Shown here piece after piece: positions 13,967 to 35,100 of a stretch of DNA of 64,000 nt. How positions within the stretch are numbered: the first letter of the stretch is position 1; every line of letters begins with the position of its first letter. A program made the translations under genes and the position numbers. This stretch comes from Zygnema circumcarinatum SAG 698-1b. Taxonomy: Eukaryota; Plantae; Zygnematophyceae. The notes beneath the pieces were generated by a model. The model did no database searches and was not told where the DNA came from. It worked only from the letters and a program-made list of their open reading frames with translations. The DNA is taken from NCBI GenBank assembly GCA_037447605.1, contig CM074804.1, positions 2,046,001-2,110,000 of the forward strand, in the 5' to 3' direction.

Positions 13967-15521
13967 AGGCCGTACGGGCTCCATCGCCCCTGCTGACATG
14001 GCGCGCTCTCCCGGTTCCCGGGGGCGCTGCGTCGGTCAGTGGCAAAACTGGCGGTAGATCTCCCCGCTTCGTGGTGGATCCTGGCCCGTTGATCCACCGC
14101 GGCCTCGTTGATCTCGCCAGTCTGCTGGGGAAGTCTGTGGCGGCGTCTCCTCGGTTCCTGCTCTCCCTCCCATTCTCTCTGGCCTGCCCAGCCGGGCTCA
14201 GTCTTGCCATGGCGCCCTGCTCGCCGCCTGCCCGCTGCGCGCGGCTGCCGTGAGCAGAGGGTGGTGCTTGCTTTCAGTGGCCGAGCGAGCTGCTGCGGAA
14301 CAGAGTGCGGCTCTGCTGGTCTGTCCTGCACTGCCTCGTGCTGTGGTGAGGCTCTCCGCCGCGCGCCTCGCTCTGAAAGGCGTCTTGCATCATTCATTAG
14401 TGGGATTCTGGCCTGGGTAAGCAGGGATTATTACTGGTGACTTGCAAGATGTGATTCGGACAGAGCTTTATCCAGCGTATGCGTGTTTCGTTCCTCTTTC
14501 CTTGAGTTTCTGGCGCGTTTTCTTGTAGCTTCACTTCTTTTGAAAAAGGCGGCCAAGCGACTTCTTTTGATGCCCGTCGCGAGCTTGACAGTGCTTGCAC
14601 TACTTTACAAGAAAGGCACTACGGTAGTGTTGCTCTTATAAAGAACTTGGTCGCGAAATTTCCAATGGCGGCTCTGTTAGGTTCCACTTCATATACCAGT
14701 TTCTTGAATCAGTACGTTATGTATTGCGAAAGCGGTTTGGTAACCTGTTCTTACGATAGTGCTTCTTCTGTTCGTGGAAGCAGGATTCCATAGTGCGCAT
14801 TGCCTTTCTCTGTAGCATCGCTATGTGTGCGGTTGCATTGCGGCATTCTGGCTGTCCTGATGAAGGCACCTTTAGCAGCCGGCGCCTTTTCCCTCCCTTT
14901 CAGTGGCCTTCTTCACGTTTAGTTCCCATGATTAGTCTTTGGTTTGAGCAGCGGAAGTTTTTCGCAGCCCTTCGCAGTTCTACCATTTTCTGGACGCGCT
15001 GGATTCAAAAACGAGCGAGGAACATTAGCACCTATTCTCGTAACTTATTGCTGTTAAATATAGTGAGAAAGAATCAGGAAACGCTTGATCAAATTTAGTC
15101 TTCGAACGATGAAATTGCTCCTCATTCGATAAGAATTTCTTACTCGGAAACTCTTTTGAGGGTTTTTATGTATTTGCCCGTTGATACTTTTTATTAAGAA
15201 CATTTTTCGTGGTTGTGAAATGAGTTCTTGGATTGCATTTGTGCAGCTTTTGTAGAACTTTTTTTCCCAAATGCCAGTAAGAATTCCTTCACGCACACTC
15301 GATGGGAATATGACCTCAGGGGGTAAAGGGAATGGCTTGGGCAGCTCACTTATCCTCCCGAGTCTTTGCGGATGCAGAGCTGCCAGCTTATGGAGTCTGT
15401 CGACCCTTTTCCTCATCTCTTCATCGTTCCTTCGCCTTCATATACAAGTATATAAATATATTTTGCAGAAGTTGTCCTCTGCCTTGCTGAGGCCATCTAA
15501 GTCGAGAACGGAGGCGAGCAA

Positions 15522-18500
15522 ATGACAGCGTCTGGCAAGGCGGCCATGGTCATGGCCAGCCGCTGCTGGCAGGTGCTGCAGCACCGCCGTGCCACCCTGC
15601 AGCACCTCTGCCACATGGTATCGGCTTCTCCTGCTACATGTGGAGGAGGAGAGTGGAGGCTTCAGGAGGGTGGAGCCTTTGCTGCTGAACGTGAGGACCG
15701 ACTTGGGGCCGGCTGTGACGAGGTAGACCATAGGAGACAGTGGATGGCTGCACATGTCCGGAGATATTCCACTGCAATTGCAGGTGGGTGGGGAGGTCTC
15801 ATCCCGTCCAACGTCAGAAAGTCCTTGAACTTAATAGTCCAGTTCAGTCCTTCCTTTTTTTCCCATTTAGAGCGTCCTGGGTTTTAGGTGCGCTTTTGTT
15901 TATATGATGGCCAACTCTGGCTGAATGGGATTTGTTTGTAACATTCCTGAGAGACTGTTTTCTTCTGCAAATAATGCGTGGAGCAGATGAAGGAATCCCT
16001 GACGAGCACGAAATATTCCGGTCTGGTCCGATGGCAGCCTATCAGAGGCACATTGCCGAGGGTACTCTGGTCGCAGGAGACGCGCATCAGGTGCTGCAGC
16101 ATGTGCATGCTCACGGCTCACTTTCAGAACTGCAAGCAAAAGTTTTCCCTTGGGCGTCCACCCCTGCTCTGCATACACATTCGTTGTATGCCCCTGGACG
16201 GACCTGAACAGGCCGTTAGAGCCGCTGTGCTTGTGACGTGGGTGCAGGAGATGGCGCTGGCGGCACTCCAGGCACTCTATGACGTGCTCATTGGCGCTGC
16301 AGCAGACGGACATTTCGCGCCCGCCAGGTGCTGCGCCACCCTGCCTGCTTTTGATAGGACCGTGGAGTCGGACAGGGCTGTTGGGTGTGGGGGCGGCCCT
16401 CACGCTGAAGCAACGCTCAGGGGAGGGATGGGAGATGTGGGGCAGGCAGCAGAATAGGAGCCTGTGGGCGCGATGGTTGCCGAAGCCGCAGGCTGCATCG
16501 GTGCGAGGGCTCTACCTGTGGGGGGGCGTGGGCACTGGCAAGACCATGCTGATGGACATGTTCTACCACGAGCTGTGAGGCTCCCTCCTGCCTTCCTGCC
16601 TTCTCCCTGCCACGCGCATTATGCGCAGATGTCCGTATCTCACATTTGGGCGCTGATGGAATGGCAGGCCTGCCTGGCTCCCGAAGAAACGAATCCACTT
16701 TCATGACTTCATGCTTACAGTGCAAGGACGGCTACAGGTGTTTCCCGATCCTTGGCCCACTTCCATCGGCAGGTTGTTGCAAGTAATTGTTCCGTGTCGG
16801 ATACTAGTACTTGTACTAGTCATCTGCAAGTTGATTAAATTCGTGGAGATTCTTCTTTAAGCAGCAGCTCCGTTTATGAGAACTTTGTAGTGGACCAGTC
16901 GTTTCCCTTCTCCTCGTCAAGGAAAACGTCAACTTTGCTCTGGTGGTTCTGCATGCCCGTGGGCTCATGAAAACCACCTGAGAGACAATTGAGGTGTGAT
17001 GTACGCAGATGCACAGGAGAGTAGCAGACCCGCTGGCTTCTGTGGCCGAAGAGCTGAGCGCAGAGGCAACAATTCTGTGCCTTGATGAATTCATGGTGAG
17101 GCCTACCTGCCCGCAAATGCTATCTACCTGCCTGAATGCGGCTAAAGACGGGATCCGAGTCGTCCCTCCTCCGTTGATGTCGAGGACTATGATGGGTTCA
17201 TAGGTGCTGACTCCTCTCTGGTGGATGTTCAGGTGACAGATGTTGCGGACGCAATGGTCCTTCACCGCCTCTTTGGACATCTGATGGCTAAAGGCGTGGT
17301 GAGAGCCATGCTGTCCTCTTGTTCACTTCTCTCTCCCAGCTCGCTTCGTGCTTTCCCTGCTGAGAGGTGCTCAGTGTCCTCATACGCACAAAAGGTTCGC
17401 TCCGTTTGTCAGTGTAAATCTGGACTTCGCTTGCGGGGATGCGTTCTTCCTCTGATTTAATTTGAGTTGACAGGTGCTAGTCTCAACCTCCAATCGGCCA
17501 CCAGATCGATTGTATGAAAACGGCCTGCAGCGTGACCTCTTTCTTCCATTCATCGCGATGCTAAAGGTGAGGGAAGGGTGTAGGCGTGCAGACTGCATTA
17601 TGTTCGCCCTGTTGAGGAGGCAGGATGCGGTCCCCTGGACTCTTGGCATAGGTCTTCAATGTGTTCCTGGGAGGTTGCTGAAAGTAGCGTATGCGTCGGT
17701 CTGCATTTTGAGTTCCATATTTTTATTGCGTAGTCTCCTATTGCGAAGTAGGGCTTGCTGTACACTTTACCGATGATTAACGCAGATTCCTCATATTATT
17801 TACATCGGTGAGTATCAAACATGGGGAAGTGTAGACATTGTCTTGACACATTCTGTATTTGCCATACTGCTCCTTCTGGGGTTCCTGCAGAGCCGTTGCG
17901 TCGTGCATGAAATTGGATCACCCACAGACTATCGCCGGCTGACTGCTGTGAGTACCAAGCTACAGAAGGGCTGGCCATTGTTACTGAGATTGCCTGACCC
18001 GTTGGACTTAACTTTTTTCAATGGAAGGTCTGGATTGGGATTGGCAGTTTCTGTTGAAGGATCTAGAGTCATTTCATCAACGGTGTCCACTGTACTTTGC
18101 AAAAGAGGCGCTGAAAGGTGGGTATTGCTCTGGTAATGCTCTGCTGTGGTGGGCTGCAGGTTCAGCGGGGCTTTTACTTCACAGGAGAGGACGCCTCAGG
18201 TTTACTGCGCGAGAAGTTTCACATGTTGACAGAGGGATTATCTGAGAAGGAGAAGTTTGTGGAGGTGGTTATGGGCCGCCGCCTGCATGTGAGACCGGAG
18301 CTCCTTTGGGATTGGGGAAGCGTACTGCCTATTTTCTGAGTGGATCAAGTTAAATGGGTGTTCTCGCTCTCACAATTTCCGGAGGTTACCCTGCAGGTTC
18401 CTTCCGCAGCTCAAGGCATCGCCTATTTTACCTTCTACGAACTTTGCGAGACACCGACTGGAGCAGCAGACTACATTGCACTTGCAAGTATGTCTCCGGG

Positions 18501-19751
18501 GTCTCAGAGCTGCAACTGGTCGCGACCTCTCTGTTGTTGCAAGAAATACAGGTCGTGAACAGGTGTCAGCTTCTGCAGGCTTGCTTCTCCTTCTTCTGGT
18601 GTCTTTTATTGTTATAACTTTGTAGGTCATTTAAACAGCTATGAATTCTATCACTTAACTGGTCTTTAGAAAAGCTTGCCTCTGGACTTTTGGCCTAAAG
18701 CCTTTCGTCCGCAAATCATTGTGGTACCTTTGCTAGCTTTTAACGAAAGAATTTATTTATTATGCGAACTGCCTGTGTGTGTAATGGGGACTCCGCGCAG
18801 AGCATTTCCACACAGTGGCGCTGGATGAAATACCAAAGTTTGGCTCCTCCAACATTTCCGCTGCACACCGCTTTGTAACCCTTGTGGATGTGAGTCGGCG
18901 TTCTCTGTTTTGTGGTCAGGAAAGCTCCAGTAAGCATGCTGTTAGGTAGTTCAAAGAATTCGCAGGTAATGTACCCATGCATTAATAAGTACTATTTTTT
19001 TCGAATGCCCTCATGCCCACAAATATCATATTATTCTTGAGCTTTTCTCTGTGATATTCAATAAACAGAACTTTGGCCACTCCCAGTTGGTTGCTTACGG
19101 AGTTTTGCTCTGAAGACGTTTGTGCAGGTTATGTATGAGCACAAGGTCCGCCTTATATGTGCAGCAGAAGCTCTTCCTGTAGAACTCTTTGAGAAGGTTG
19201 TGACAATCGCAGACGCGCCAAGAAGGACGTCGTCGAGATCTGGTCGTAGTGATGAGGTGGATCTGGCGGTCGACAATGAGCTGGGCTTCGCCAAGGAGCG
19301 CACCATCAGCCGGTGAGTGGCAGGGCGGATGCCAGGGTGTTGCAGGGCACTTTATGCTGACGTGGGGAGTCTCAGCTCTACTGTTGCATTCTCGACATGT
19401 GAGCATGTGGCAAAGGAACAGAGGAAACAGAGAACTGAGAAAAGAGAAAATAGAAAATAGGCTGCAGTCCAGAAGCTGGCGTTCTCACAGCGGAGTAATG
19501 GGTTCCCGAGCACAGAAGGTGGAGGGGTCCAGCAGATTAGACGTGCATGCAGGGATGTTTTGGCAAACGAGCGCAGGCGGGTTGGGGCAGAGCTGTGTGC
19601 AGGCGTGCTTGCAGTGCTGAAGCAGAGGGCGTGCAACGGGTGCAGGCTGACGGAGATGCAGAGTAGCGAATACGAGGAATATCACGCGGCCCATAGCCGG
19701 CGGGTGAATGACCTTGTTCAGGAGGAAGGTCCGTTTCTACAAGCGGTCTGA
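15522..19751 (+). CDS. AFG1L: AFG1/ZapE-like (LACE1/AFG1L) mitochondrial AAA+ ATPase, multi-exon
   Basis: Spliced exons give [22 protein letters not shown], Walker [30 protein letters not shown], Walker [91 protein letters not shown]. Stop at 19749-19751. Confidence 0.95.
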
Positions 19752-21321
19752 CAAGGCGACTATTTTTGTGGTGGCGTCAGCTATCTCATCCTCCTGTACG
19801 ACAGAATAGTACATGTCGGGATCGGTACTGTAGTAACAATCCGTACGTAATTGGGGTTAGGGAGTGGAAGCCTGAAAGGTCGTTCCGACGGTACGACATC
19901 GTACACATGCTGTGGTTGGAACTATTTACCATTTTACGACTGGAAAAAAAGGAAAAAAATGAAGGAAGGAAGTAAAGGATGTGGCATTGATTTCAGGATG
20001 GCGATGCCATCAAATGTACTATGGCTGCCGTTTTACAGTATATTCGAAGTACGTTGTACACTGTACTTCGAGTCGTACAGATGGATTGTGCAAGCAGGAT
20101 AGCTCGCGGTTTTAACCTTCCTGATATTTTGCCGCTTCGCACATAGTTCCTGCCGTACATAGGATTGTTTTAGTAACAGCTGGCTGAGAGGAAGGAAGAG
20201 ACACATACTTGAGGAGAATCAGAGTTCTCCTCGCGCCGTATACTCTTATCAACTGGCTCCGGCAGCATTAAAAAATCATTATTGTCAAAGGACCACTAAC
20301 ATGTGATGCCTTCTAGGATACAACTGAACGAGGGTTCCTCTTGGCCTTGTAGACCCCTACTTAGTGTACGTTTGGATGGCTATAAGTGATCCTACCGGTC
20401 GAAGAGGATGAAGTCGTCTGCTGTTCGCTGTTGCAGATTTAACTGGCCAGAGTCGCCCCGTGAGGGTGTCTGAGGATGTCTGCTGCGCCACAGGAAGTCG
20501 GTGTCACTTGTTGGAGGCTGGGACCGATGAAATGAGTGTTGTGGTTTCGGCATCACTCTGCCTCAGTAGCCTGCCAGGAAACACCGAGTTCCAACCTTGG
20601 GCGGACAGCGGCTGGAACGGCTCTTTAATCGCACCATGTCGTGCCTGTTGTCAGAGCTGGCTGTCAACTCACGTGATATGGCAATTGCTGTTACACCAGT
20701 CTCAGCGGCGAATGGTTTTTTTCGACTTCATTCTACAATACCGTATTCAGTTTGTGAAATCCGAAAGAGCTAGAAAATTGCACAGTGGCTTGGAAATTCT
20801 GGAGTTCCTTCAAAAACATGCTAATCTTGAAAATACAAGTCAACGCAATGTGGTGCATCCGAACGGCAGCCACAACATAGCGCATGGGCTCCATTTCCCG
20901 CAGGAGCTCTCGGCGGCAGGGGCACCTGCCACAGCCACCGAGCCGAGCTGGTTGACCTCTCCAGCTAAACACCAGTACCACTAGCAATAAATCGATATAA
21001 GGTTAAGAAAAGGTACAGCCGGCGGTACAGATGAAGCTCCACTCTGCCCAGGAGACTCCAATCCTACGCCTCCCCCCCACCCCCCACTCTGCTACGCTGC
21101 CTCCAGTGTCAATCAACCCATTCTTCCAGCGACGCCAGTGCCACCAGAAAACCCCACATGATTGGAAGGGCGTCACCAGGGTCGATAAAACCCACCACTT
21201 ACACTTTCCGATCAAGCAGGGGTCCAACCGAGGGTACAGTCAAATCCTAGTCATGTCATCCCCAACAAGCCATCCTCGCTTCCTGTACACAGGGGCCTCA
21301 CAATCATCATCATCATCATCA

Positions 21322-24300
21322 TCACGAAGCTCGCCACTCCTTGATGGTCATGTCAAGGCTGGACGACCAGAGCGCGCCATCCTCGGCAACGGCGAGCGCT
21401 ACTACCTCGTCGTCATGCTCCAAAAGGGTGAAGACACATTTTTCGTCGCTCCAGGCTCGGATGGTGCCGTCGTCGTGGCCCGACCAGAGGAGGCCCGTGG
21501 GACCCATCACCATGGCCCGCAACGAAATGTCAATGTGCGACTCTATGCTGAACTTGCAAGTCACATTGTCCCAGCCCTTGATGAGACCGCGCAACCCCGC
21601 TGACCAGAGGATGCCGTCGTGCCCTGCAGCCAGCGCCCTTACGGGACCCATTCCGGCATCGATCGACTTGACACAGCCCCTGCCCTGCCGCCAAGCTTTG
21701 ATGGTCCCATCCTGACTTCCGGACCATGTCAAGCCATCCACCCCCTTCGCCAGCGCTTCTACGCTCCCAGTGTGTACACGGAAAGTGGTAAGGCTTTGGC
21801 AGACAGCCATTCTTGGCTGATGACGCCACGTCTCTATGCTTGCACCATGCCCCGACCAGACAGTCCCATCCGAATCTGCCAGAAGAACAGAGATCTTTTC
21901 ATTGACACAACTAATTGCAACTTGTTCTAAGTTCAGTGCCTGCTCGTCCCAATGCCACTTTGTGATGTAACCTTTGTCGCAACCAGACCAGAGAGACCCA
22001 TCTGAGGCAGTGGCCAGTGCGCATATGCGGCCCCTGTGTTCAGTGTCTGCGGAGGCAGCCATGAGCTCTTGTCCGCGGCAGCCGCTGATCGCTGCCCCCC
22101 ACCCTGCCCAGAGCATGCCCTCCTGCGCCGCCACCATGCACATGGCCGCCTCCTCGGGGGGAGCGGCCCCATTAGCGTAATCGGCGCTAAACAACGACAT
22201 TTCTAGGGTGTGGATGCACACAGGCCGACCCGTTCGGCGAGAGCTGCAGTCATGCAAAACAGAGTTTTAAGTGACACACAGGAAAAAAAAGAATGCGCCT
22301 CTTGCCAATACGAGACTCGATTAGGCTTTCAAAACTCATCAGAGGAGACCCCAAATGCAAATGCAGAAATTACGGTATCACCGACATTCAACTTGTATGG
22401 AAAATCTGCGTGCTCGAGTAATGCGACGTAACTGTACGTTTGCATGAAATCGTATGACTAACCCTTAGGAGCATGAGAGGCTACAGAAAGATAAAGGCCA
22501 CGTGCCCATGTGACGGGTGGGGAGCCATGGCTGCTCAGGTTACATCAATATTTTGCCCCCCTCCCAACTCTTTAGCCAATCAATTCTCTAAATCACGAAA
22601 TTTGAGAAGACGCAAAACAAAAAAAAAAAAAGGGGGGGGTGCATCTGACAATCACCCCAAAGGCCTCTGACGCATGCAGTCGTCAATAGGAAGCAGGACT
22701 TCCTTTTGCAAAAGAAAGACAAATTTGCAAGAGTGTCCTTATCAGTCTGCCCAACTTACACGGATGATCGCTGCCCGCCGTGAGCCTTCACCTGCTCATT
22801 GGTCACAAAAGAGAGGGGGGAGGCAGACTGGGTCAGTGGCAACGCTGCACTGCCAGTGTTGCTTATGCTGATGGGTTATGTACTGACAGTTGTGCTGAGC
22901 ATTGGATTGAGAGACAGAGCTTCCCAGAAAAGAAATTTTGATTGAACTCCAGGGCCAACACAAATGCAAGGATTGCACATAAAGGTGGCATGGTGAGACT
23001 AAGGCTTAGTGTCCAAGACTTGATTCAGGTCACGTACAGAATAACATACACTATGCTATTAGAAACGAAACAAGTCAGTCAGCAAAGTCAGTTCAACCAT
23101 CTTAAACCTTTGGGCCATAGCTCTTTATCTCTAAGAGTGTGAGCACCATCATTCTCATGCACCAACTGTCTCCTCCTGAACATATGAAGCTGACTCTGAA
23201 GACCAGTCCAGGAAGTAGATCCGACCTCAGCAGCAATGGCCTGTTGGATGTACTTGAGCCAGCTCTGTGCCTCGTCGTCCTGCTCCGCTCCCATCTGCAG
23301 CAGCATCGCCCCTCCCCACCCATTCGTGCTGACTCAGCTGAGCCCCTGAATGCAGCTTGAAGCTGCCGTTTAAGGGTTGGTCCATGATAGTATCCACAGC
23401 TCTAAATTCAATTTCAGCAGTCAAATTTGCGCTTCCAACAAGCTCAATACATTCTATGTGCGCTTACCAGCAAAGGCCAATGGCTCTGCCCGTGAAGACT
23501 GAAGCAGTGCAGCTTCTGAATCCCTCATCAGGTTGAAATGTATGCAACAGAAGGGGATTAAGACAAAGCAATCTGTTAGAATTCAGCCAAAGTTGGAACA
23601 GCAACGCCTGCAGCAGCAGCAGCAGCAGCATGCTTGTGGCAGGCAGGGGCAGAACCTTGCCTTGCCGTTATAGGTCGCTGTGCCCTTCTCAACAATGCGG
23701 CTATAGCTGTTAAGAACGTACTCCTTCTCGGGCACCTGCTGACCAGCACAGTCCGGAGCCCATCATCATTCGTACAACAACGAGGGTAGTGCAAACGGGC
23801 AGCCTAAAGGACATAGTAACAGGCACTGCAATAAGGGGCAACAATGTCAATTGCAGGATGTTAGCGAATCCCAGCACTTGCACACACACGAGCCACCACC
23901 TGCGGCCCTGCACCCCCAGTGACTGGCAAGGCCGAACAGCTCCTGCTCTCATTCAAACGTCTTGCAGTCAGTGAGTCAGACAGCGCAGTGGCTTTGACCT
24001 AAAAATCTGCTTTTTATGCACCCGATTGGGCCACATGCTCACCCAATGCAAAACCAAAAGCGGGAGGCAATGGGCTCAAGCGAACACGCTTAGCTCAGAG
24101 CAGAAGGGAGATTCACTGCACCTCATTGCCAGCCACCATTGGCAGGCCCTTATAGCAGCCAAGTCTTGCAGGGTTGGAGTTGAGTGCGATGAATCTCTTC
24201 TCCCATAGCAGACTGAGACCAGAACGACGCGAGCGCAGCAGCCACCCCCACTTGCGCGCCCATAGGAGCCCCATGGTAGGGTCGACCATAGAAGGGCTCT

Positions 24301-26690
24301 CAGCCCTGCTTTCCCCCCATACCCAAACACTATGGCTCAGCTGCAGCTCCATATGTGAGAGCAGCAACGGGGGACCCTGCAGCATGCCCTGATGGCGCAT
24401 GTTTCAGTCTGGCAAGAACATCACCTACGGGAGACTTCATCTTCCAGACTATTTTCTCGCATCAAGTCGTGACGTCGCAGACTTTTCTACCTGGGCTAAA
24501 GAATGGAAGGAGCAATACGAAGGTTCCGAGTTACTATTGCTGACACTGCATGTAAGGAGGTGTCCGATGAGGTGCTTGAGTGAACAACGCGGCAAAAAGA
24601 GAATATGCAATAGGAAACAAATGCAAAATGACAGCGTACTGACAGAGTCTACTGGAACCAATTCCGAGTTGGAAAGTAAATGAAGATCAGCACATGTATA
24701 GGAAGTGGAGGCAGCAATGCAGGGCATGGGCTTACTTTGGGCTCGCGGCGGGTGGGCTCGACCAAGGAGACTCTGCCGCCGGCTTTATTGAAAGCGATTG
24801 CACGGCTCGATCCTCCTCCCCACCCAACACTTGGCCTTGTCCTTCCTCATCTCCTCCGTTTGCGGTGCTTCCAGATATCTGAGCTTCTACGGGACCCCTC
24901 CCCTGCCAAAGAAAGAAAGCATTGGTCGCTTAGGGGGACCTCTCTGAATTTCAGCGAAAAGGGGCGTAGGCAGCTTGAGGATGAACGATCACCAGAGGGA
25001 GGACAGGCGCGGGATGCATGGCATGCGGAAAGAAGAAAGCCAAAAGCACAGTAAATAAGGGGCTGAATAGGCAAGGGAAAGTAGCTGGAAAAAGTGCTCC
25101 TCTCCAGAACCCAGAGGTTTTCTTAGTGGGGGTCAACACTCTCTTTCACAAGTATGGAGAGGGAACAAAGTTTAATGTGTACCAGAGTCGGAGGAGGACG
25201 AGAAGCAGGAAATGCGCGAGCAACAATTGTTCTCGTGCCAAGGACTAGAGAGCAAAATGTCACAACGAATTCACAGTATTTGATAGCAAGATATGTTTAG
25301 AGAAAGGGTTGGAAGGAAGCATAGGGAGGTAAGAAAGCTATTGAAGCTCTATGCACAGGAAGGACACCGAGCAGTTAATCCAGCAAGTAGATTGTTAATC
25401 TACTGCATAAGGGCATGAGAAGCTAGGGCGAGATAATTGACAAAGAAACTGGAAGAGATTGCCCCCATAGGGAACTGAAACACCCCTGCTCCCTGCCAAC
25501 CCGCTGAACCCTTCCGGCTTTGTAGCTGAGCTCACCAAGCTGCTGCCACTCTTCTCTGGCAAAGAGGGCTCCCAGCTGCGCCTCTCCTCAATCGTGCCGA
25601 GAAGCTCCGGCCCGCCCTCTCCCTTCTGCAGATGGTCCGTCCGCCGCTGCCGGTCGACCTCGGCCTCGGCGTGCTGAGCTAACATGAACAGCACCGGGAC
25701 GACCTTATCTTCTAAATCTGGTCTCAACTCTCGCCTGCGTTCAACACACTGCAGTGCCAGTCTCACAACTATGCCTGCTTTATCCTTGGGCCAATTCCCT
25801 GCTGAAGGGTCCAACTTGCTAAGGATATGATCTGCTGCCTTATCCAAGCCCTGACGCCAACGACTGCCGGTCGACGCTTCCAGAACAGTGCGGAAGGCTA
25901 AGCTTACTTCCTCCAGATTGTCACTTGAATCAGCCAGCCTTGCTAAGAGGGCATTCAATACGTCCTGGGAATTTTGGCGTTGTGTACGCATTTCACAGTT
26001 CACAAGAAATGCATGAAGTTCAGCTATGTCAGGAATCCCAGTCATGATTTGCAGGATGACCAGGCCCAAGGCATAAACATCTGACTGCCTAGTCAGCTGC
26101 CCTGTCTCTTGTTGGTGAGGATCAATGTATCCAAATGTTCCACGAATATCGGACACCAAAGTGCACATGTTATTACCATACAACTTCGCAAGTCCCACAT
26201 CTGCCAGCTTGCAGGTATTGTGTCGGTCTAGAAGAACATTCTCTGGTTTCATATCCCGGTGCAGAATATGGCGGAGATGCATGTGAAGTAATCCAGCTGC
26301 CATTTCAGATGCGATGCGGAAACGATCATGCCACATAAGCGGAGGATATGACGAGCCCTTATTTTTTCGATTGAGATGATCGTGCAGACTGCCTCCCGAC
26401 ATGAACTCTGTCACGATGCACATGCGCTCTGCGCATATCCCAATCAGAAGGACAATGTTCGGATGCCGCAGGCGAGTCAGTGTTGACACTTCTCTCAGCA
26501 TGCTCGCTTCTTCACCCTCTAGCTCCTGCGGACGCAAATGCAGTCGCTTCACGGCAATCCTCGTCCCATACAAAAGCCCTTTATAGACGCTGCCGAATCC
26601 TCCCCCACCGATAAAATTACTCTGCGAAAATTTGTCGGTGGCTTTCTCGACTTGCTCAGCAGTGAGCTGCCACAAGTCGGAATTATCCAT
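21322..26690 (-). CDS. Predicted single gene: RLCK-IXb-type Ser/Thr kinase - linker - PH domain - 7x WD40 (~883 aa)
   Basis: Exons (minus strand) 26690-25536, 24902-24736, 24305-24122, 23735-23661, 23515-23468, 23294-23226, 22791-22760, 22243-21322; all phases match (0,2,0,0,0,0,2) and one donor is GC. Kinase: GGGGFGSVY, IAVKRL, HRDMKPENVLL, DVGLAK, GTFGYIDP, LDPSAGNWP...RPDL. PH: RKWGWLLRS...WEKRFIAL...LGCYK...KLHCFSL...LMGAEQDDEAQSWLKYIQQAI. WD40: e.g. HTGSVEALAKGVDGLTWSGSQDGTIKAW. The individual domains are high confidence; their joining into one transcript is moderate. Confidence 0.75.
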
Positions 26691-28148
26691 GACGAGCCAC
26701 TGGAGCTTCTTGAATTACTAGGCATATAGTCCTCACAAGATTAGAAGTAACATATCAATAGAGCCAGAATCCTTGTTGACGACCTGATATCTGAGGAATA
26801 GTGGGCAAGTTACTTGATTGATGGCCGCAGAGATTTCCTGCCAAAGGTAAGAGAACGTGACCCATAAAGTATTGCTCAATTTCAGCATTGCATGAACCAA
26901 TCACTGGCGAATCCTTTCGATAAGGCAACATAGGGCCAAAACATGTTCAAAATCTATTAACTTAAATAAACGACAAAAGATCGAGCATCATTGTGTAACT
27001 GGTGCGTGCAGCTTTACCTGCTTCCATGTACAGCTATCCAGTTTCTTGCGTCAATTCACTCCAATGTAGTATTAACCTATGTGTATGGTTCTCGTTCATG
27101 CGACGTTCTTCACTCATCGTATTTTCTCACCATATTCATTCAAAATCCAGAACGGGTCCTACTTCTCTACGCACAAGGGTACGCCCTTTCTCAATTTAAT
27201 GAACAACGGTCCAAGAAGATGACATTGAAAATAAGAACCCTTAATTTATTAAATTACTTTTATTAAAGTCCTCCGATGATAATGCAAAACACGTGCTGAA
27301 AAGAATGCAAACTAAGCGTGTAATCACCCTCCATCCTAAATATTTTTCCGTTTAACGTATTACTTGTTCAATTATGAAAATTATAGAATGATGACACTGG
27401 CAGTTTGCCTTGAGCAACAGGAAGGAAATTTGACTAGCTGTGAAAGGCGTCCTAATAGCTATTGCGTATGCATAGCCAACTGGAGCTCTCTGTGCTGTGG
27501 CATACCTGAAGTCAACTTCATCCACCTCCGCAAGTGCACAAGTTGATGTGAAGGTTCAAAAGGGCTACGCCAATAGCCCAGGCCTCATGAATTCGAATCT
27601 TCTTATTCAGTCTCCAATCGCATTGTGCAAGAAAGAAAATCGAGAGAAGTGCAGCTCTCCATCACCTCATTCCTTCAACCTTCTGCAGCAGCATGGCCAC
27701 CCTGCCCTGCCCTGCCCTGCCCCGCCCTGCCCCTGCCCTGCAGCACCGCCCCACAGCCTGCCCTCTCGCTTCCTGGAACGGCTCCAGAGCAGCAGCAGGG
27801 AGGGAAATTGCGCCCTCCGCCAAAGTCAAAGCTCTCAGCCGCAGCCGACGCACCTACCATATCGTATCATATCGTATCGACTATTCAAATATTATCGAAA
27901 TTGGTATATCGTATCGTCACGTCGACACACGATACATGCGCTCACCCACATTCCCATGCGAGGGCCAATATCGGCCGCCCGTGAGCACTGCCCGACACGA
28001 TACGATACTGGGCTGCGCCTGCGGACTGGAGGGCGAAGGGCCTAGCCATGGCGGTCGGGCTCAGGAGGACTCAGGCGTGAGGCGAGGCGAGGGGGGGGGA
28101 CTCGCCGACCTGCGTATTTTTGCGTGCATGAAGGGGGGCAAGGGCCGG

Positions 28149-29612
28149 ATGGCTCCTACAATGTTAATGTTCATGCAGCGGACACGGTAAGTGTGGGCTT
28201 TTATTTTTGGGGAGATCAATGCCACATCCTCCTCCTTTTTCAGGCTCGCTGTGCAGTCGCTGCATGGGACGACCGATAGCATTAGTTGTGCTACAGCGGA
28301 TCTCTGTGCGGGGCGCAGGGTGATCGGGGCGGCCGCTCGAAGCTATGGAAGTGCAGCTTCAACAGCTTCATATACCTCTGCAGCGGAGGATAAGCGCCCC
28401 TGGCTGCGACTGACTGGTGGATTGTTGCTGAGTGGAGCGCTGGGAGTAGCCCTGGCAAGCGCTGCAGATGACCTTCTCATATATCGGCAATGCAGTAGGT
28501 CTCATCGTGAACCCTGTAGAGTAACAATAACGATAGGAAGAAAGATCAGAAAATTGGTTTGTTCTAGGTTTTTGATAACCGCAGTAGCTTGTGTGGAGTT
28601 TATTTGTGCAGCATGCGCTGTGTAGTGGTGCTGCTCTGTGCAATTCAAGCCTTTCCGTTGAAGTAGTTGCGTCTCTCCACCTCTCTTCTTACTGAGGTTT
28701 GGCTGCTGTCACATACCGTAGTAACTTGCTAGTACCCTGTTTTTAGTATTAGGATTTTACTAATCCTTCTTTCTTAGCAATAGTGGGCAAGCGGTTTCTG
28801 CAGCCATCCTGGTCCTGGTCGAAGTCACGTTTTCACCTTTTCAGTCGAATTGTTCCCTTCACTATTTTTATATTCCTATGCCGTGAAAAATTGTCGATGG
28901 GATTTTTACACTATAAATTGCATGGTGTGTGCATAGATACCATGCTAACTACAAATGAATGTTTCAAGCTGCAGCGAGGCTAGGGAGAGAGCCCTGAAGA
29001 GCACAAACCTGCAAACAGCCCTTGGAGAGCCTCTGCGCGTGGGCCCGTGGTACACAGCCACCCTGGCCGTTGCGTCGAGCCGGAGATCCGTCTCTATTTC
29101 GCTGCCATTGGAGGGCAGCCGCGGCAGTGGCAGCTTGCACCTCAGAAGCCTGCGAGTGGGAGGTAAGTTCTACTCCTCGCTGCAGCTTGCCTAGCACTTG
29201 TTGGTACGGGAGGTCGCTGTTCCTACAAGATTGGTTTCATGGTGGCGGGAGACAGCATTCATCAATCGTGTGGGGTTCCAACCTTCGTAAGTTTTGTTTT
29301 TGTTTCTTTAAGCTACAAAGCATTCAAAAGTTATGATGTTCGTAAGATAGGTTCCATGGGCCACTGATGAAGAAGGGTTCTGCAGGTGGCGAGAACACTC
29401 TGGTATACAACACATTTGGAAGCGGGCAGTGGACATTGATGACCCTGGAGGCGGTTGTTGAGCACACCGACGCAGCAAGTGAGGGAGGGAAAGTGCAGGC
29501 TGGCCAGAAGCAGAGGCTAGATTTGATGCCTAAAGGCGAGTTACCGAAGCCAGGCGACCTAGGCAGGGGCGAGTGCGGGCCGTGCAGAACAGCTGACCTG
29601 TCTGTGGTTTAA
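28149..29612 (+). CDS. COA1: Plant-type Coa1-family (cytochrome c oxidase assembly) mitochondrial protein, ~235 aa
   Basis: Exons 28149-28186, 28244-28498, 28975-29162, 29386-29612 (708 nt). A TM segment is followed by LLIYRQCSSEARERALKSTNLQTALGEPLRVGPWYTATLAVASSRRSVSISLPLEGSRGSGSLHL, matching the plant Coa1-domain pattern. The start codon is uncertain (28128-28168). Confidence 0.75.
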
Positions 29613-30415: not shown

Positions 30416-31550
30416 TCAAGCCGCTTCAGGATCTCCACCAAGCTCTACCCGAAGGTTGTCATAGGGATATTCTCGAGGAGTCTGCAAGAAAAAAAGCGTC
30501 AACACATAGAAGATCAGCCATCCACACGACACCCCTGCCAGTCCTAGTCTTAGACATGAGGGCGCAAGTATATTTTGTCCAGGCAGTTGGGGTTTCGCTG
30601 TTAGCAAGCCAATGATTTGTCTTTTCTTGTTGTTCACAACATCAAAATGAATCACACTACTTGAGATGATTCAAAGTGCAGGCCAATTCATCACCCGCAC
30701 TGCGTGAGGGATTTTGCAAATGCAACCCTCCTCCCTCTCGTAAACAACCGATGGCTTGCTGCGATACATGCAAATAGTTTCAAATAGACTTCGCATTAGA
30801 CAAGCAGAAGGTCCATACTCAGCATAAATTAAGCAAAGCAATGCTCTGTGTCCAGAAAATGGTTTGGATAAGAGTACATACGAATGGCACTCGCGCTGCC
30901 TTGTTGTTCCATGCTGCCAGTAAGCCTAAAGCTACAAAAATTCCAAGCCCTCCGGCAAGCATGCCAAGACCCCCCAACTGCATATGCAACACGATACTTT
31001 GTCAAATTCTGATCCACTTGGACGGAAGAATCATTGGTGCTAAGTTTTCTCTTATAACTTCGGCGTAGATGAACGCATCCTATGGGTCAACATTATGCAA
31101 TCATGCGAACCGATGAAAACGAGGCCTTTCTCACTTAAGTTTTAGGGAGGGACACAGTAAGAAGTCCGGGCATGAAAGGACAGGTGATGCTGAAAGGTTT
31201 ACATCGCTGATATTTGGTAGAATGTGATCGATTGCCGGTTCTGGATTAGCAGTCCCGTCATCCCAAGTAAGCTCCTCGTTTTCAGGAAGCTGTATCCCAA
31301 GAGAAAAAAACACACGTCTGTTTAAATACGACGACAAAGCTCACCCTTGAAAATACAAACGAAAAGCATGGGGCGCAGTCCGCCCTCTGAGAGGAGAGGG
31401 GAAAAGGCTGACCGGTTTGGAGGGCGGCGGGAGGGTTCCCAGAGGCATGCCTACACCCGCGCGGCCCGCGGCAAGCATGTGCGCAGGAGGATGGCCCGCA
31501 AGACGCCGGCTCAAGCACGCGCCCAGAACGGTGCGCAAAGGACTCGCCAT
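30416..31550 (-). CDS. NDUFB8: NADH dehydrogenase (complex I) subunit B8/ASHI, 128 aa
   Basis: Exons 31550-31413, 31289-31203, 30977-30882, 30481-30416. LPENEELTWDDGTANPEPAID...LAGGLGIFVALGLLAAWNNKAARVPFTPREYPYDNLRVELGG is the plant NDUFB8 signature. Confidence 0.95.
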
Positions 31551-31601
31551 GGCCGCTCCGCTCCGCTCCACTCCGCTCTTTCTCTCCTCCCCTCGCCCTT
31601 G

Positions 31602-31692
31602 CCCTAACCCTAATCCCAACCCTAACCCTAACCCTAACCCTAACCCTAACCCTAACCCTAACCCTAACCCTAATCCTAATCCTAACCCTAAC
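31602..31692. repeat. Interstitial (CCCTAA)n telomere-type array, ~15 units, in the NDUFB8/NRPA1 divergent promoter
   Basis: Direct reading: CCCTAACCCTAATCCCAACCCTAA...CCTAACCCTAA, between the ATGs at 31550 (-) and 31967 (+). Confidence 0.95.
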
Positions 31693-31966
31693 TCTTTTCC
31701 CCCGCTCCAAACCGTACCAATATTCGTACGGTCCATACGGATTAGGGCTCGTACCGTACGGTGCTTCAATACTATACTGAACTGAACGGCGAGACAGGGC
31801 CTCCGCGGCGAAGCGGCGGCGCTCGAGGGCGAGAGAGGGAGGGAAGGGCGGAGGGCGGGGGAGGGAGCGGCTATGGCCGCGCCTGCGTGACTCTCGAGGA
31901 GGCGGCCGGCTGCACGACATAGAGAGGGAGGGAAGGGGCTGAAGCAGCAACGGAAGCAGAAACGCC

Positions 31967-32072
31967 ATGGCCGCTCGCGAGGAGGTACGTGGCGCGATGC
32001 TCGGGTAGAGGACGGGGCTCGCGCCAGCTGGGCAGGGGGGGCGGGGGGGGGGGGGGGGGGGGNNNNNNNNNN

Positions 32073-32112
<40 letters not shown>

Positions 32113-35100
32113 GCAGCCGCGTCTCAATTAAGGGCGGGGAGGGCGTGCAAGGTGCAGGTGACGGTGAAGGTGGTGGCGGGCGTGGCCTTTGGAGTGTTCC
32201 ACGCGGAGGAGGTCCGCGCTATCAGCGTGAAGCGCATCACCAGCCACATCATGTTTGATAATATGCAGAACCCCGTGCGAGGGGGGCTTTACGACCCCGC
32301 GCTGGGGCCCATGGACGTCAAGGATATGTGAGCGGATTCAGGATGTTGTGTAATTTTGGAACCACTTGCACATGAGTGGTTCTTGTTAGCTTATCTAAAG
32401 TATGAACGTGAATGGTGCTTTACAGAGATTTTTTTTTTTTCTGCGAAAGAGCAAAAACCAAAAGGACATTAGAGAAATTTAAGTAAACGAGGAAACTCTG
32501 CTAACGAAAGGCATGAGAATACGTGTCCGGGATGCAGTTGTGAGACCTGCCGGCTTTCATATGCTCACTGCCCCGGTCATTTCGGACACATTGACCTCGC
32601 GCTGCCGGTGTACAATCCGATGCTGTTCCCGGTTCTCTACAAGCTCTTGCGCTGTATTTGCCTCAGCTGTCACCGCTTCAAAATGGCTGCAGCGCAGGTC
32701 ATCCAAAAACAGCCCGCCTTTTGCCCCTCTGCCTCTTCTAGGATTGGGCCTCTCTGATCAAATTGCTGGAAGTAGTGTTTACTGAACTATTGCTGGCTCT
32801 TTCAGTCACTAACCATACTTGGTCTTACAAAAGGGCTCATGTTTTGTACCAGACACATTTAAGCTGACACTCAAGTAAGAATGAAACTAGGACGCGAGGC
32901 AAGTGTTATGACACGTGGGACTCCTGCCTGACGTAGTTTATTTATATTTTAGTCAGCCGAAGTAACTCTATAACGTTTCTCAAGGAAGGAAGTGCATAAT
33001 TCTCACTTTACACGGTACAAGGGGGCAAGGACTGGTGAAAACATGCCATGACACATGGTCACATGGTCACATGGTCTTAGTACCCATTGTATTCTTTTAT
33101 ATGTGTTGTTAAGGTTCCGTTTTGAGAACTTTATAACTCCATTTAGGAAACTTGGCCATTTCGCTTGTCTTGAGACCAGGTTCTTGCGACCTTGCGACCT
33201 GCCGTCTCTTCACTGCTCCATTTTTTCCTGAGTTTTGTTCGATAAAAACAGTCAAAGTAGTCTGTTAATCAAGCTTCTTTTGTTTGGTTTTATTTGAAAG
33301 GTAGATTCGATCCCCACTTTCAATGCCTGTTTCATGGATTTAACGTACGCTGTTGCTGATGCTACAGGTGGAATATCACAAGCGAAAGCTTCAGCTGGTG
33401 TTACAAGGAGCGCTTGTGGAGGCATTGGCAATTGCAGCACCCAAGGTGGCTCAAGAGGGCCGTGAAGCGAAGGAAGAAGAGGGCATAGACCTTGGACTTG
33501 ACTCGGAGGAAGAAATGCAAGTGCAAGAGCCGCTGGTGGTCCAAAAGGGCGAGACAAAGTTGACAACGCATGCGGTTGCAGCAGCTGCGAATGTTATTCG
33601 CGACTTTATTTCGAGCATGCCGAAAGAGAAATGTGGAAATTGTCAGGCACTGAATCCAAGTCTGCGTAGAGACGGACACGCCAAACTGTTCTTGGTGCGC
33701 CCGCCTGTGACCTTGGCGTGTAGGTTTCTGTGGAGGTGTTTGAATTATTGACTGCTCTGAGGCAGGGGTGTTTAAGTGACCTCTTGGATTTTCAATACTT
33801 GTGACGCAGATACCCCTGTCCGCCCGGAAGGAGGAGCGAAATGCTCGCCAAGGAGTACGGTTTCCGAATGTTTTATCAGAAGCAAGAGGTGACACAATCC
33901 TAACAGAAGAAAAGCAGACGGTTGTGGAGGTGGGGAAGAAGGATGACGGCACGGTCCAACATACATCCAACAGTTCGATTTTTGTGAGCGCAGCCGAGGT
34001 GAGCATCTTGCGCTTACAGTCAGCAGCTGTTGGAGGAATCGCATGCCTGACCAGAAATTAGGAAGTTCTGCTTCTTCGGACATGTTACCCAAACTCGTCA
34101 GTAGTGCTTCTTGAATTTGCTCTGTTTTTGCACACTAAAGCACAAAGTTTAACTGGCAGTATGAGCGTCCCCATTAACAGGATTGCATATGAACTTCTCA
34201 AAGGAGGGGGTTTTTGTTGTTATTGGTGTCACTGCTGCGAATTTGTCTGCTGGGCATCACCTATACTCCATCGTCTCATGAATCTTCAGTGTCTTTATTC
34301 AGCATGACACTTGGATTCTTGAGCATCACTGTCTGGTCCCATGCCTCGAACAGCTTAGTTTGAGTCTTTCGAGATTTTCCCACTGCAAGATAGGAAGGCC
34401 TTTATCTTCTTTCTGGTTGGCTGAAGGGTGCATGTCTTAACTGTGAGGCAGCTGATGTGAAGAGAGAGGCGGCAACAGGTGGAGGAGCACTTGAAGAGGT
34501 TGTGGACCAATGAAGGAGAGGTGTGCGACCTTGTGTGGGGAAACAAACTGGAGTCGCAGCAGTGGAGCGGCCATGCCGCCTTCTTTCTGCATGCGGTTCT
34601 AGTCACTCCCAATCGCTTCCGCCCGACTAACAAGCTCGGTGACAAGGTAAGCATCTACGGAGAGCACAGACATCCTGTAAAGTCTCATCGGGCAAATGAT
34701 CTATAACAAGGAGTAGAAGACTTATCAGAATAGCTTCAGACGCTCGCCTTTCATTTGGGAGAACAAATGTGGTTCATGGCAGGAGTGCGTGCTAGTAGCC
34801 ATAGACATCAACAATCCCATTTCGTTTAATTCAATCCGTGAGAGCTCTATTGAAGGATGAAGGCAAACAAACTGAGTTTTTACTTGACTTGGAAAGGATA
34901 CAGGACCCGATGCCGAGCCACAGGTTCTTCTGACAACTTATTCAGTTATTGTTTCGTCATATCCTAGATGTGTACCTCAGCTTAGTGTTGGTATACCGGC
35001 TGCCCGAATGTAGGTAGTCCTTACGGGGTTGTGAAGGCAGTATTCTTGATGGTAAAACCACCTCTCTGCAGGGGCCCTAGAAGCGTGAGGGCATGCTTCG

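Follow-up and report, generated by a model that had tools for sequence, protein, structure and literature searches.

A single spliced gene of Zygnema circumcarinatum joins a kinase of the U-box lineage to a probable PH domain and a WD40 propeller

We analysed a window of 64,000 nucleotides from Zygnema circumcarinatum SAG 698-1b (assembly GCA_037447605.1, contig CM074804.1, positions 2,046,001 to 2,110,000). A locus that appears at the level of open reading frames (ORFs) as a lone kinase and a lone WD40 protein is a single three-domain fusion, and its gene model is corrected here. We consider it likely that the gene makes one expressed, cytoplasmic Ser/Thr kinase of 883 aa that belongs to the U-box lineage and in which a PH-propeller unit replaces the E3 module for targeting and docking. 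The locus provides a transcript-verified replacement of an accessory module in the U-box kinase lineage, the functions of which are poorly understood even in Arabidopsis.

Results

One minus-strand gene with eight coding exons

Four public RNA runs from three studies supplied contigs, which were aligned to window positions 21050-27049. The gene comprises a non-coding leader exon and eight coding exons, as follows.

Leader exon, 3' end: 27506..27538 (-); non-coding, last ~30 nt placed
Leader (5' UTR) intron: 26838..27505 (-); GT..AG, 668 nt, donor GT at 27505-27504
Coding exon 1: 25536..26837 (-); 147 nt of leader, ATG at 26690, whole kinase and start of the linker, aa 1-385
Protein kinase domain, RD type: 25656..26627 (-); aa 22-345
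Intron 1: 24903-25535 (-); GT..AG, joint in four runs
Exon 2: 24736..24902 (-); Ser/Gly/Glu/Pro-rich linker, 22% identity to P0001
Intron 2: 24306-24735 (-); GT-AG, RNA joint
Exon 3: 24122..24305 (-); end of the linker and first part of the probable PH domain (GLLWARKWGWLLRSRRSG..LWEKRFIAL)
Intron 3: 23736-24121 (-); GT-AG, RNA joint
Exon 4: 23661..23735 (-); middle of the probable PH domain
Intron 4: 23516-23660 (-); GC..AG, RNA joint
Exon 5: 23468..23515 (-); probable PH domain
Intron 5: 23295-23467 (-); GT-AG, RNA joint
Exon 6: 23226..23294 (-); C-terminal helix of the probable PH domain with the signature Trp (SWLKYIQQAI)
Intron 6: 22792-23225 (-); GT-AG, RNA joint
Exon 7: 22760..22791 (-); 32 nt, start of the predicted propeller, immediately after the PH helix
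Intron 7: 22244-22759 (-); GT-AG, RNA joint
Exon 8, coding part: 21322..22243 (-); remainder of the predicted seven-bladed WD40 propeller, stop codon at 21322-21324

The spliced frame of 2,652 nt encodes 883 aa and has no internal stop. Seven spliced joints in the RNA contigs connect the kinase ORF through six small exons to the WD40 ORF; six of the seven coding-region introns are GT-AG, and the intron at 23516-23660 is GC-AG. RNA depth was about 50-300 over exons and 0-18 over introns. Record 4 of contig X1 (3,402 nt) spans the leader through exon 7, other contigs bridge exons 7 and 8, and contigs covered 25535-26840, and with it exon 1, in all four runs. A loose contig end at 26840 also recurred in every run, and its 30 letters have one match only, at 27509-27538. 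Exon 1 also contains in-frame stops ahead of the ATG at 26690. At the other end, the 3' UTR runs on past 21322 to about 21117 or further; the exon 8 contig includes this UTR and merges with the convergent neighbor in some runs. The neighboring genes are an AFG1-like ATPase and one ORF without a family assignment.

The first-pass annotation, made from the sequence alone, had proposed that eight exons with matching phases form one 883-aa protein. The open frame, its length, and the seven RNA joints bear this out, and the two junctions it had singled out, 25536/24902 and 24736/24305, are RNA joints at exactly those positions. That the scattered kinase, small, and WD40 ORFs belong to one gene also agrees with P0001, a colinear 941-aa protein encoded in another organism's transcriptome.

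The locus could also be read as two adjacent genes, a kinase whose ORF stops at 25395 and a separately promoted PH-WD40 gene, with the fusion a read-through product or assembly chimera. Read without splicing, the DNA does contain a kinase ORF of 431 aa that ends in a stop of its own (25395..26690(-); Pkinase E 3e-41) and a WD40 ORF (21322..22257(-)) that matches WD40/beta-propeller families. Moreover, some contigs keep intron 1, at a depth of 11-15 compared to 85-136, and the exon 8 contig was somewhat deeper than upstream exons in all four runs (X1: 283 versus 174). However, the stop at 25395-25397 falls within intron 1, all four runs have the 25536/24902 joint at full exon depth, flanked by 30-167 nt on either side, and the same low background is seen in all introns, as expected of pre-mRNA. 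The phases match to give the open 883-aa frame, and the P0001 contig encodes the same fusion as a single ORF. The two-gene reading is thus already largely refuted, and we give it almost no credence. An additional shorter transcript may cover exon 8.

A small family with the same architecture

P0001 is colinear with the 883-aa protein over its whole length at 60% identity. Since the spliced product matches an independent protein in this way over 883 residues, the single spliced gene is not a product of chance. By part, identity to P0001 was 77% for the kinase, 65% for the PH segment, 59% for the propeller, and 22% for the linker, a low-complexity, poorly conserved stretch of about 100 residues. 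The first 56 residues of P0001 were considered as an N-terminal extension and set aside; they have no counterpart in the window and resemble a translated 5' UTR. A third locus, L002, is unspliced and carries the kinase, the PH exons, and the WD40 part in the same order with the introns retained. Conservation across all three domains reads as ordinary purifying conservation.

Among the 150 best kinase relatives drawn from 1.84 billion representatives, none except P0001 had a matching propeller or PH segment, and no other protein with the PH-propeller module was found among the billions of sequences searched. Searches with the propeller ORF and with the C-terminal half of P0001 found no stand-alone PH-WD40 donor, no split annotation, and no public entry that represents the protein of this locus; the matches were limited to generic WD40 proteins (P0151, P0277, and P0278) and bacterial Reg_prop proteins. 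P0151 was tried as a second relative (E 9e-36) and rejected, as it combines a coiled coil with a canonical WD40 domain and has neither kinase nor PH. The three members found suggest a small, lineage-restricted family.

The kinase descends from kinases with a C-terminal U-box

The Pkinase match covers aa 22-245, and the C-lobe continues to about aa 345 with a family-specific insert of about 35-45 aa. All catalytic residues are kept, and the recognizable motifs include the G-loop, the beta3 Lys, the alphaC Glu, HRDMKPEN, DVG, and LDPSAGNWP...RPDL. APE is replaced by IDPH, with His in place of the Glu, a change that might affect the activation segment.

In the kinase phylogeny, the window kinase, P0001, and P0009 formed a clade (support 100/98) nested inside a Pkinase+U-box clade of 17 rows that holds all 11 U-box kinases (support 98/85). 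The tree sets the kinase apart from RLCK-VII, LRK10L, WAK, CRK, L-lectin, LRR-VIII, PERK, PTI1-like, and BAK1-like kinases. DVGLA is found in 10 of the 11 U-box kinases and in the window family; the LRK10L, WAK, CRK, L-lectin, LRR-VIII, BAK1-like, PERK, and PTI1-like rows have DFG, and the motif pattern located no DFG/DVG site in 12 RLCK-VII rows. LD..AG.W..RPDL is common to the U-box kinase clade and the window kinase and absent from the other groups. The nearest named matches were Closterium Pkinase+U-box proteins and PUB33/34-like proteins, and identity to U-box kinases was 37-41% over full-length kinase matches. Tree position and motifs together show that the kinase descends from plant kinases with a C-terminal U-box E3 domain (PUB-VI/RLCK-IXb type). 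The RLCK-IXb assignment of the first-pass annotation, which had relied on DVGL and the RPDL motif, is supported by this nesting and by both shared motifs; the IXb label derives from named PUB33/34-like and U-box-bearing relatives, in a tree that holds no Arabidopsis RLCK-IXa/IXb/XII-2 references.

A C-terminal U-box defines PUB-VI. Among Arabidopsis RLCK-IXb proteins, 9 of 20 carry one (10.64898/2026.02.10.704836). In contrast, no PF04564 match was found, tblastn with nine U-box kinases found the kinase alone in the window, and the introns and flanks hold no U-box or USP relics. The ORF begins 21 residues before the kinase domain, and no USP-like match or long alpha-helical region was found upstream of it. 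The earlier remark that neither U-box nor USP is visible therefore stands, at the level of both domain matches and relics. Since the U-box is missing and a PH+WD40 tail is present instead, no E3 ligase activity is expected.

The first-pass annotation had also suggested an immune module. Integrated-domain or decoy roles are seen for RLCK-XII-2 pseudokinases. In angiosperms, PUB-VI/RLCK-IXb proteins are targets of pathogen effectors (10.64898/2026.02.10.704836; PMC12803775), which would fit such a role here. Nonetheless, no NB-ARC, TIR, or LRR lies in or adjoining the gene, the kinase retains its catalytic residues, and conservation is of the ordinary purifying kind in all three domains. We regard an immune integrated-domain or decoy function as very improbable.

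A WD40 propeller preceded by a probable PH domain

The C-terminal part is confidently predicted to be a seven-bladed WD40 propeller. PF00400 scored 40.3 bits against a threshold of 27 (window 21325-22257(-)). The best-scoring Pfam family for the propeller ORF was Beta-prop_IP5PC_F (PF23754), which exceeded its gathering score of 27 in each of the three members (55, 37, and 41 bits). The AF2 model of the orthologue P0001 had 28 strands with pLDDT above 90, and its propeller superimposed on WDR5 with a TM score of 0.80 (rmsd 3.5 Å) and on G-beta with 0.76-0.83. The strand count and structural matches of the orthologue agree with the seven WD repeats counted earlier.

The segment between linker and propeller is probably a PH domain. 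It carries the signature residues (GWL-basic...W-basic-R-F-x-L at the start and the Trp in the C-terminal helix). As the PH segment of the window is split over four exons, the Pfam scan was run on P0001:440-640, where PF00169 scored 21.0 bits against a gathering threshold of 25.1 (E 4.9e-4) and matched profile positions 5-104 of 105. All 10 matches of a PDB profile search were PH domains, weak ones at E 0.085 or worse, and PEPP1/PLEKHA4 ranked first, with an end-to-end alignment; the language-model (Atlas) neighbors also all belonged to the PH clan. Two AlphaFold runs, on P0001:490-941 and on the segment alone with a 7-row alignment, gave pLDDT of 33-61, and the predicted folds showed only the helix and the final three strands. 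Thus, of the complete PH domain claimed earlier, the signature, the nearly full profile span, and the uniformly PH remote matches hold up, whereas the score stays below the Pfam threshold and the folds are of low confidence.

The same segment bears on how the protein might be targeted. Phosphoinositide binding is weak or absent in most PH domains, the match to PH is weak in sequence, and no spacer separates the PH helix from the first strand of the propeller; all three would suit a segment that binds no lipid and acts as a protein-interaction fold or structural cap, making the C-terminal half a pure protein-docking scaffold. Against this, basic residues in the beta1-beta2 region (RSRR...EKR), at the beta1 end and beta2 start, resemble those of lipid-binding PH domains, PEPP1/PLEKHA4 among them, and no other evident membrane anchor is present in the protein. 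We judge the lipid-independent scaffold rather unlikely.

Discussion

In the reading we favor, of a PH-propeller that substitutes for the E3 module, this unit would take over targeting and docking. The PH domain probably directs the fusion either to membranes that contain phosphoinositides or to a partner protein; PH-driven targeting is suggested by the basic beta1-beta2 residues together with the lack of an N-terminal Gly for myristoylation. The propeller probably binds a substrate or regulator, and the tethered kinase, predicted to be active, would phosphorylate what is recruited. More tentatively, and on balance doubtfully, an ancient kinase-E3 ligase may have exchanged its output for a rigid PH-propeller in a lineage-restricted family. 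The product would be a docking kinase gated by phosphoinositides, unmatched in land-plant models and convergently analogous to the PH-CNH targeting module of animal MRCK/citron. If true, this would exemplify how streptophyte signaling kinases are rewired by module swapping.

Among the closest known systems is PUB-VI/RLCK-IXb (Arabidopsis PUB32-35 and PUB50-53; Closterium Pkinase+U-box), in whose clade the window kinase is nested and with which it shares HRD(L/M)KP.N, DVGLA for DFG, and LD..AG.W...AL.C.E...RPDL. Unlike these proteins, it lacks the U-box, USP, and long N-terminal helical region and has the C-lobe insert (35-45 aa), His for the APE Glu, and the PH+WD40 tail. The sister group of the kinase consists of (RING/TRAF zinc finger)-kinase-Sel1 proteins from transcriptomes (P0279/P0100, P0115, and P0044; support 99/94), in which, as in the window family, another repeat module replaces the U-box; the Sel1-bearing P0100 and P0115 also have DPH in the place of APE. 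The sister group differs in its accessory domains, with Sel1 repeats and RING/TRAF fingers where the window family has PH and WD40. These related proteins argue for repeated exchange of accessory modules in the kinase lineage. The same kinase scaffold coupled to a U-box, Sel1 repeats, or a PH-propeller is a natural experiment that helps to separate the role of the kinase from that of its partner domain.

The first-pass annotation did not know this architecture from land plants. Literature searches for kinase-PH-WD40 found none, apart from the RING-kinase-WD40 family UPPER; the claim holds for the PH-bearing form but not for kinase-WD40 fusions at large, since UPPER/PhWD2 is a land-plant family reported from Marchantia and Selaginella upward (PMC10286513). 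The window protein might then be a divergent UPPER member that lost its RING rather than a U-box kinase with a new tail. In both, seven WD40 repeats follow a plant-lineage kinase (PMC10286513), the nearest look-alikes by features in the ESM Atlas were streptophyte Pkinase+WD40 clusters (0.93), and an N-terminal RING is present in the near-sister kinase P0044. However, the 150 best kinase relatives offer no propeller or PH match beyond P0001 and do not include UPPER, and the closest single-domain kinases have U-box, Sel1, and TRAF modules, not WD40. By its published description, UPPER differs in having an N-terminal RING while lacking a PH domain, and green algae are reported not to have it (PMC10286513); the window protein has no RING match and no room for one before the kinase. 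Descent from UPPER therefore seems highly unlikely, and a U-box-lineage kinase with a new tail is preferred.

Further afield, PkwA (bacterial) and MHCK-B (Dictyostelium) were among the structural matches of the propeller and follow, as do LRRK2 and VPS15, the logic of joining a catalytic kinase to a propeller that serves for docking. MRCK, ROCK, and citron have the order kinase-coiled coil-PH-CNH propeller, and in MRCK/citron the PH lies beside a propeller-like CNH, which directs the kinase to membranes and GTPases. As the kinases of all these proteins belong to unrelated families (AGC, alpha-kinase, ROCO, and bacterial STK), the likeness is one of architecture only and thus convergent. The propeller of plant inositol polyphosphate 5-phosphatases 12-15 (PF23754) has the DG.LWSG..DG.I..W repeat flavor in common with that of the window; the PF23754 matches here are partial and repeated along the profile, the phosphatase domain is absent, and these enzymes were not among the top structural neighbors of the propeller. 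Altogether, kinase-WD40 fusions are already well known and the components are ordinary; it is the PH-bearing arrangement that is rare and lineage-restricted.

Kinase and WD-repeat ORFs belong to one transcript

The first-pass annotation had joined a kinase ORF and a downstream WD-repeat ORF, from the sequence alone, into a single gene for an 883-aa kinase-PH-WD40 protein. We used four public RNA runs from three studies, all of one organism, and mapped their contigs on positions 21050-27049 of the window. All four runs carried seven splice joints at full exon depth; six of the seven introns are GT..AG and one is GC..AG. The gene features are listed below.

Features of the kinase-PH-WD40 gene
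27506 (3' end), minus: non-coding leader exon, mapped by a loose contig end
25395..26690, minus: kinase ORF, 431 aa (Pfam Pkinase, E 3.2e-41, aa 22-245)
24903-25535, minus: intron 1, RNA joint, GT..AG
24306-24735, minus: intron 2, RNA joint, GT..AG
23736-24121, minus: intron 3, RNA joint, GT..AG
23516-23660, minus: intron 4, between coding exons 4 and 5, non-canonical GC donor (GC..AG), spliced in 4/4 runs
23295-23467, minus: intron 5, RNA joint, GT..AG
22792-23225, minus: intron 6, RNA joint, GT..AG
22244-22759, minus: intron 7, RNA joint, GT..AG
21322..22257, minus: WD-repeat ORF, 311 aa, 3 kb downstream of the kinase ORF on the same strand

A single contig of 3,402 nt starts in the leader and continues through exons 1-7, and exons 7-8 are bridged by other contigs. 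Contig depth in the four runs was ~50-300 over exons and 0-18 over introns, with unspliced low-depth contigs spread evenly over all introns in a pre-mRNA-like manner. The joined exons make up 2,652 nt and encode 883 aa with zero stops, exactly the length predicted, and both junctions that had been proposed (25536/24902 and 24736/24305) are present in the RNA contigs. The gene is one transcript, and the observation of a kinase-PH-WD40 fusion is confirmed.

A loose contig end at 26840, common to all runs, maps to 27509-27538 and marks the leader exon; the leader intron is 668 nt. Since in-frame stops lie between its acceptor and the ATG at 26690, an N-terminal extension of the protein is ruled out. 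The spliced leader holds at least eight upstream ATGs (window 26691-26837 and 27506-27800, minus strand), and a 42-codon upstream ORF opens 35 nt upstream of the main ATG, overlapping the main ORF start in another frame; these features make translational control of the mRNA by its leader possible. One contig of X1, one of the four runs, reaches ~1.5 kb past the leader junction; this could mean that the 5' UTR is long or that the transcript of a divergent neighbour has been merged in.

Neighbouring features
28191-28625, plus: ORF of 144 aa, lying upstream of the leader exon; its start is rich in Ala/Ser and it includes a hydrophobic stretch
16279-18558 (ORFs; gene probably ~15500-20000), plus: AFG1-like ATPase gene, PF03969 on three ORF pieces
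31282-32127: assembly gap (run of N, read as X)

The upstream ORF had no Pfam match and may represent exon 1 of a gene transcribed divergently from the kinase gene. The AFG1-like ATPase gene is multi-exon, with Walker A GVGTGKT, and lies downstream in convergent orientation; in three runs its RNA contigs join those of the kinase gene beyond position 21050, so the two 3' ends are close, adjacent or overlapping. No NLR-type or other immune domain was found near the kinase-PH-WD40 gene. The assembly gap adjoins proline-codon runs and long dinucleotide microsatellites translating as (RV)n, (GL)n or (NP)n.

The architecture is conserved in two relatives

An exhaustive HMMER search with the kinase ORF against 1.84 billion cluster representatives returned a single close relative of full length, P0001; this 941-aa protein is encoded by one ORF on a Logan contig of 3.3 kb from run SRR8128903. 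It aligned end to end with the spliced 883-aa model at 60% identity; its first 56 residues resemble translated UTR, and the conserved protein start is MD(N/D)xDLW. Identity was 77% in the kinase core, 59% in a C-lobe insert, 76% in the C-lobe end, 22% in the linker, 65% in the PH segment and 59% in the propeller, indicating that the three domains are constrained and the intervening linker is not. A second relative, P0009, matched the window kinase at 52% identity in the HMMER search (50% by BLASTP). On its 4.9-kb contig (run SRR9302961) the same strand carries, further downstream, two PH exons and a WD40 ORF, and intron-like gaps occur at places comparable to those in the window gene. This brings the family to at least three members. 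Among the 150 best kinase relatives and the other proteins retrieved, no further one had a matching PH segment or propeller, nor did searches with the C-terminal half of P0001 or the window propeller ORF reveal any; the window gene's own product was absent from the protein collections searched.

The kinase domain descends from U-box kinases

The nearest named relatives of the window kinase were Pkinase+U-box proteins, both those of three Closterium strains and those named "U-box domain-containing protein 33-like" and "34". We placed 51 kinase domains, labeled by source name or Pfam architecture, in a maximum-likelihood tree with a Capsaspora kinase as root. P0001 and P0009 joined the window kinase in a clade (100/98), and the sister of that clade was a set of kinases with RING/TRAF zinc fingers and Sel1 repeats (99/94). 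This six-row group was nested inside the U-box kinases (98/85), separate from RLCK-VII/PBL, LRK10L, WAK, CRK, L-lectin, LRR-VIII, PERK, PTI1-like and BAK1-like kinases. The sister kinases P0279, P0100, P0115 and P0044, from other organisms and known only from transcriptome assemblies, have a (RING/Sina/TRAF zinc finger)-kinase-Sel1 architecture, which is another unusual U-box replacement in the same kinase lineage.

The motifs DVGL and LDP..GxWP...RPDL, previously taken as family markers, proved common to the family and the U-box kinase clade. DVGLA replaces DFG in 10/11 U-box kinases and in the window family, and occurs in none of the other kinase groups where the motif was located (RLCK-VII rows were unmatched by the pattern); the C-lobe motif LD..AG.W...AL.C.E...RPDL is present throughout the clade. 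Catalytic residues are all kept (G-loop, beta3 Lys, alphaC Glu, HRD-K-N and the Asp of DVG). His takes the place of the APE Glu (IDPH; window ~26169-26177, minus, aa 172-174 region) in all three family members and in the Sel1 relatives P0100 and P0115 (MDPH/IDPH), while the TRAF relative P0044 and U-box relatives retain DPE; this is a shared derived change. A private insert of ~35-45 residues before LD..AG.W (window ~25821-26024, minus, aa 223-290) also occurs in P0009, and the U-box, Sel1 and TRAF relatives lack it.

In U-box kinases the U-box follows the C-lobe motif by 35-45 residues, whereas the window protein has a Ser/Gly/Glu/Pro-rich linker there. Nine full-length U-box kinases searched by tblastn against the 64-kb window matched only the kinase, with no U-box or USP relic, in keeping with the absence of both modules noted at first pass. 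The PUB-VI/RLCK-IXb architecture is USP + helical + kinase + U-box, with a U-box in 9/20 Arabidopsis RLCK-IXb members (10.64898/2026.02.10.704836). Because its architecture differs, the window protein is a kinase-domain relative of that group and not an architectural member. The product is an intact RD kinase that descends from U-box kinases and lacks the E3 and USP modules.

A probable PH domain precedes a seven-bladed propeller

aa 450-566 (exons 3-6), minus: PH-like segment with a classic PH opening, GLLWARKWGWLL-RSRR-...-LWEKRFIAL

The segment ends in a Trp-containing helix, SWLKYIQQAI. In P0001, the Pfam PH match covers profile positions 5-104 of 105 but scores 21.0 bits (E 4.9e-4), below the cutoff of 25.1. 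A three-member profile searched against all PDB sequences gave 10 matches, all of them PH domains and all weak (E 0.085 to 3.4), the best being PEPP1/PLEKHA4 over 110 positions; ESM Atlas neighbours, taken as a lead only, were all of the PH clan (top score 0.86). The "complete PH domain" proposed earlier is probable, though sub-threshold in Pfam; pLDDT was 33-61 for the segment in two AlphaFold runs, too low to confirm its fold. From sequence features, the segment is very probably a PH domain, and the chance that it binds lipid is about even.

Pfam matches in the WD-repeat ORF were WD40, at 40.3 bits against a cutoff of 27, together with several propeller families, led by Beta-prop_IP5PC_F (55 bits). 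An AlphaFold model of residues 490-941 of the orthologue P0001 reached pLDDT >90 over ~300 residues and comprised 28 strands in seven four-stranded blades, which agrees with the seven WD repeats counted initially. The first strand directly continues from the PH helix. The model superposed on WDR5 (target-normalised TM 0.80, rmsd 3.5 A) and on G-beta, and matched generic Swiss-Prot WD40 propellers, including those of the kinase-WD40 proteins PkwA and MHCK-B. Altogether, the earlier structural reading is supported, with the PH part probable and sub-threshold.

Comparison with known kinase-WD40 and kinase-PH proteins

LRRK2, VPS15 and MHCK are textbook kinase-WD40 fusions. Such fusions are already widespread, and kinase-WD40 clusters in the ESM Atlas came from Streptophyta, fungi and cyanobacteria. 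None of the nearest kinase relatives of the window kinase carried WD40. UPPER/PhWD2 is a land-plant RING-kinase-WD40 family whose reported range runs from Marchantia and Selaginella up to angiosperms and excludes green algae (PMC10286513). Our literature searches, which covered UPPER/PhWD2 by its published description, turned up no RLK/Pelle-type kinase-PH-WD40 protein; the fusion is a candidate novelty. The window gene is a domain-swapped U-box-lineage kinase, with three sequences to date.

We propose that the protein works as a PH-targeted docking kinase, in which targeting and docking would fall to the PH-propeller unit: the PH domain would recognise a phosphoinositide of the membrane or a protein, a substrate or regulator would dock on the propeller, and the tethered kinase would be the output. 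The linker between kinase and PH is an unconserved flexible tether. N-myristoylation is impossible because the protein lacks an N-terminal Gly, leaving the PH domain as the sole candidate for membrane targeting. The arrangement follows a logic similar to that of MRCK/citron (kinase ... PH-CNH propeller); since the kinases are unrelated, the resemblance is convergent.
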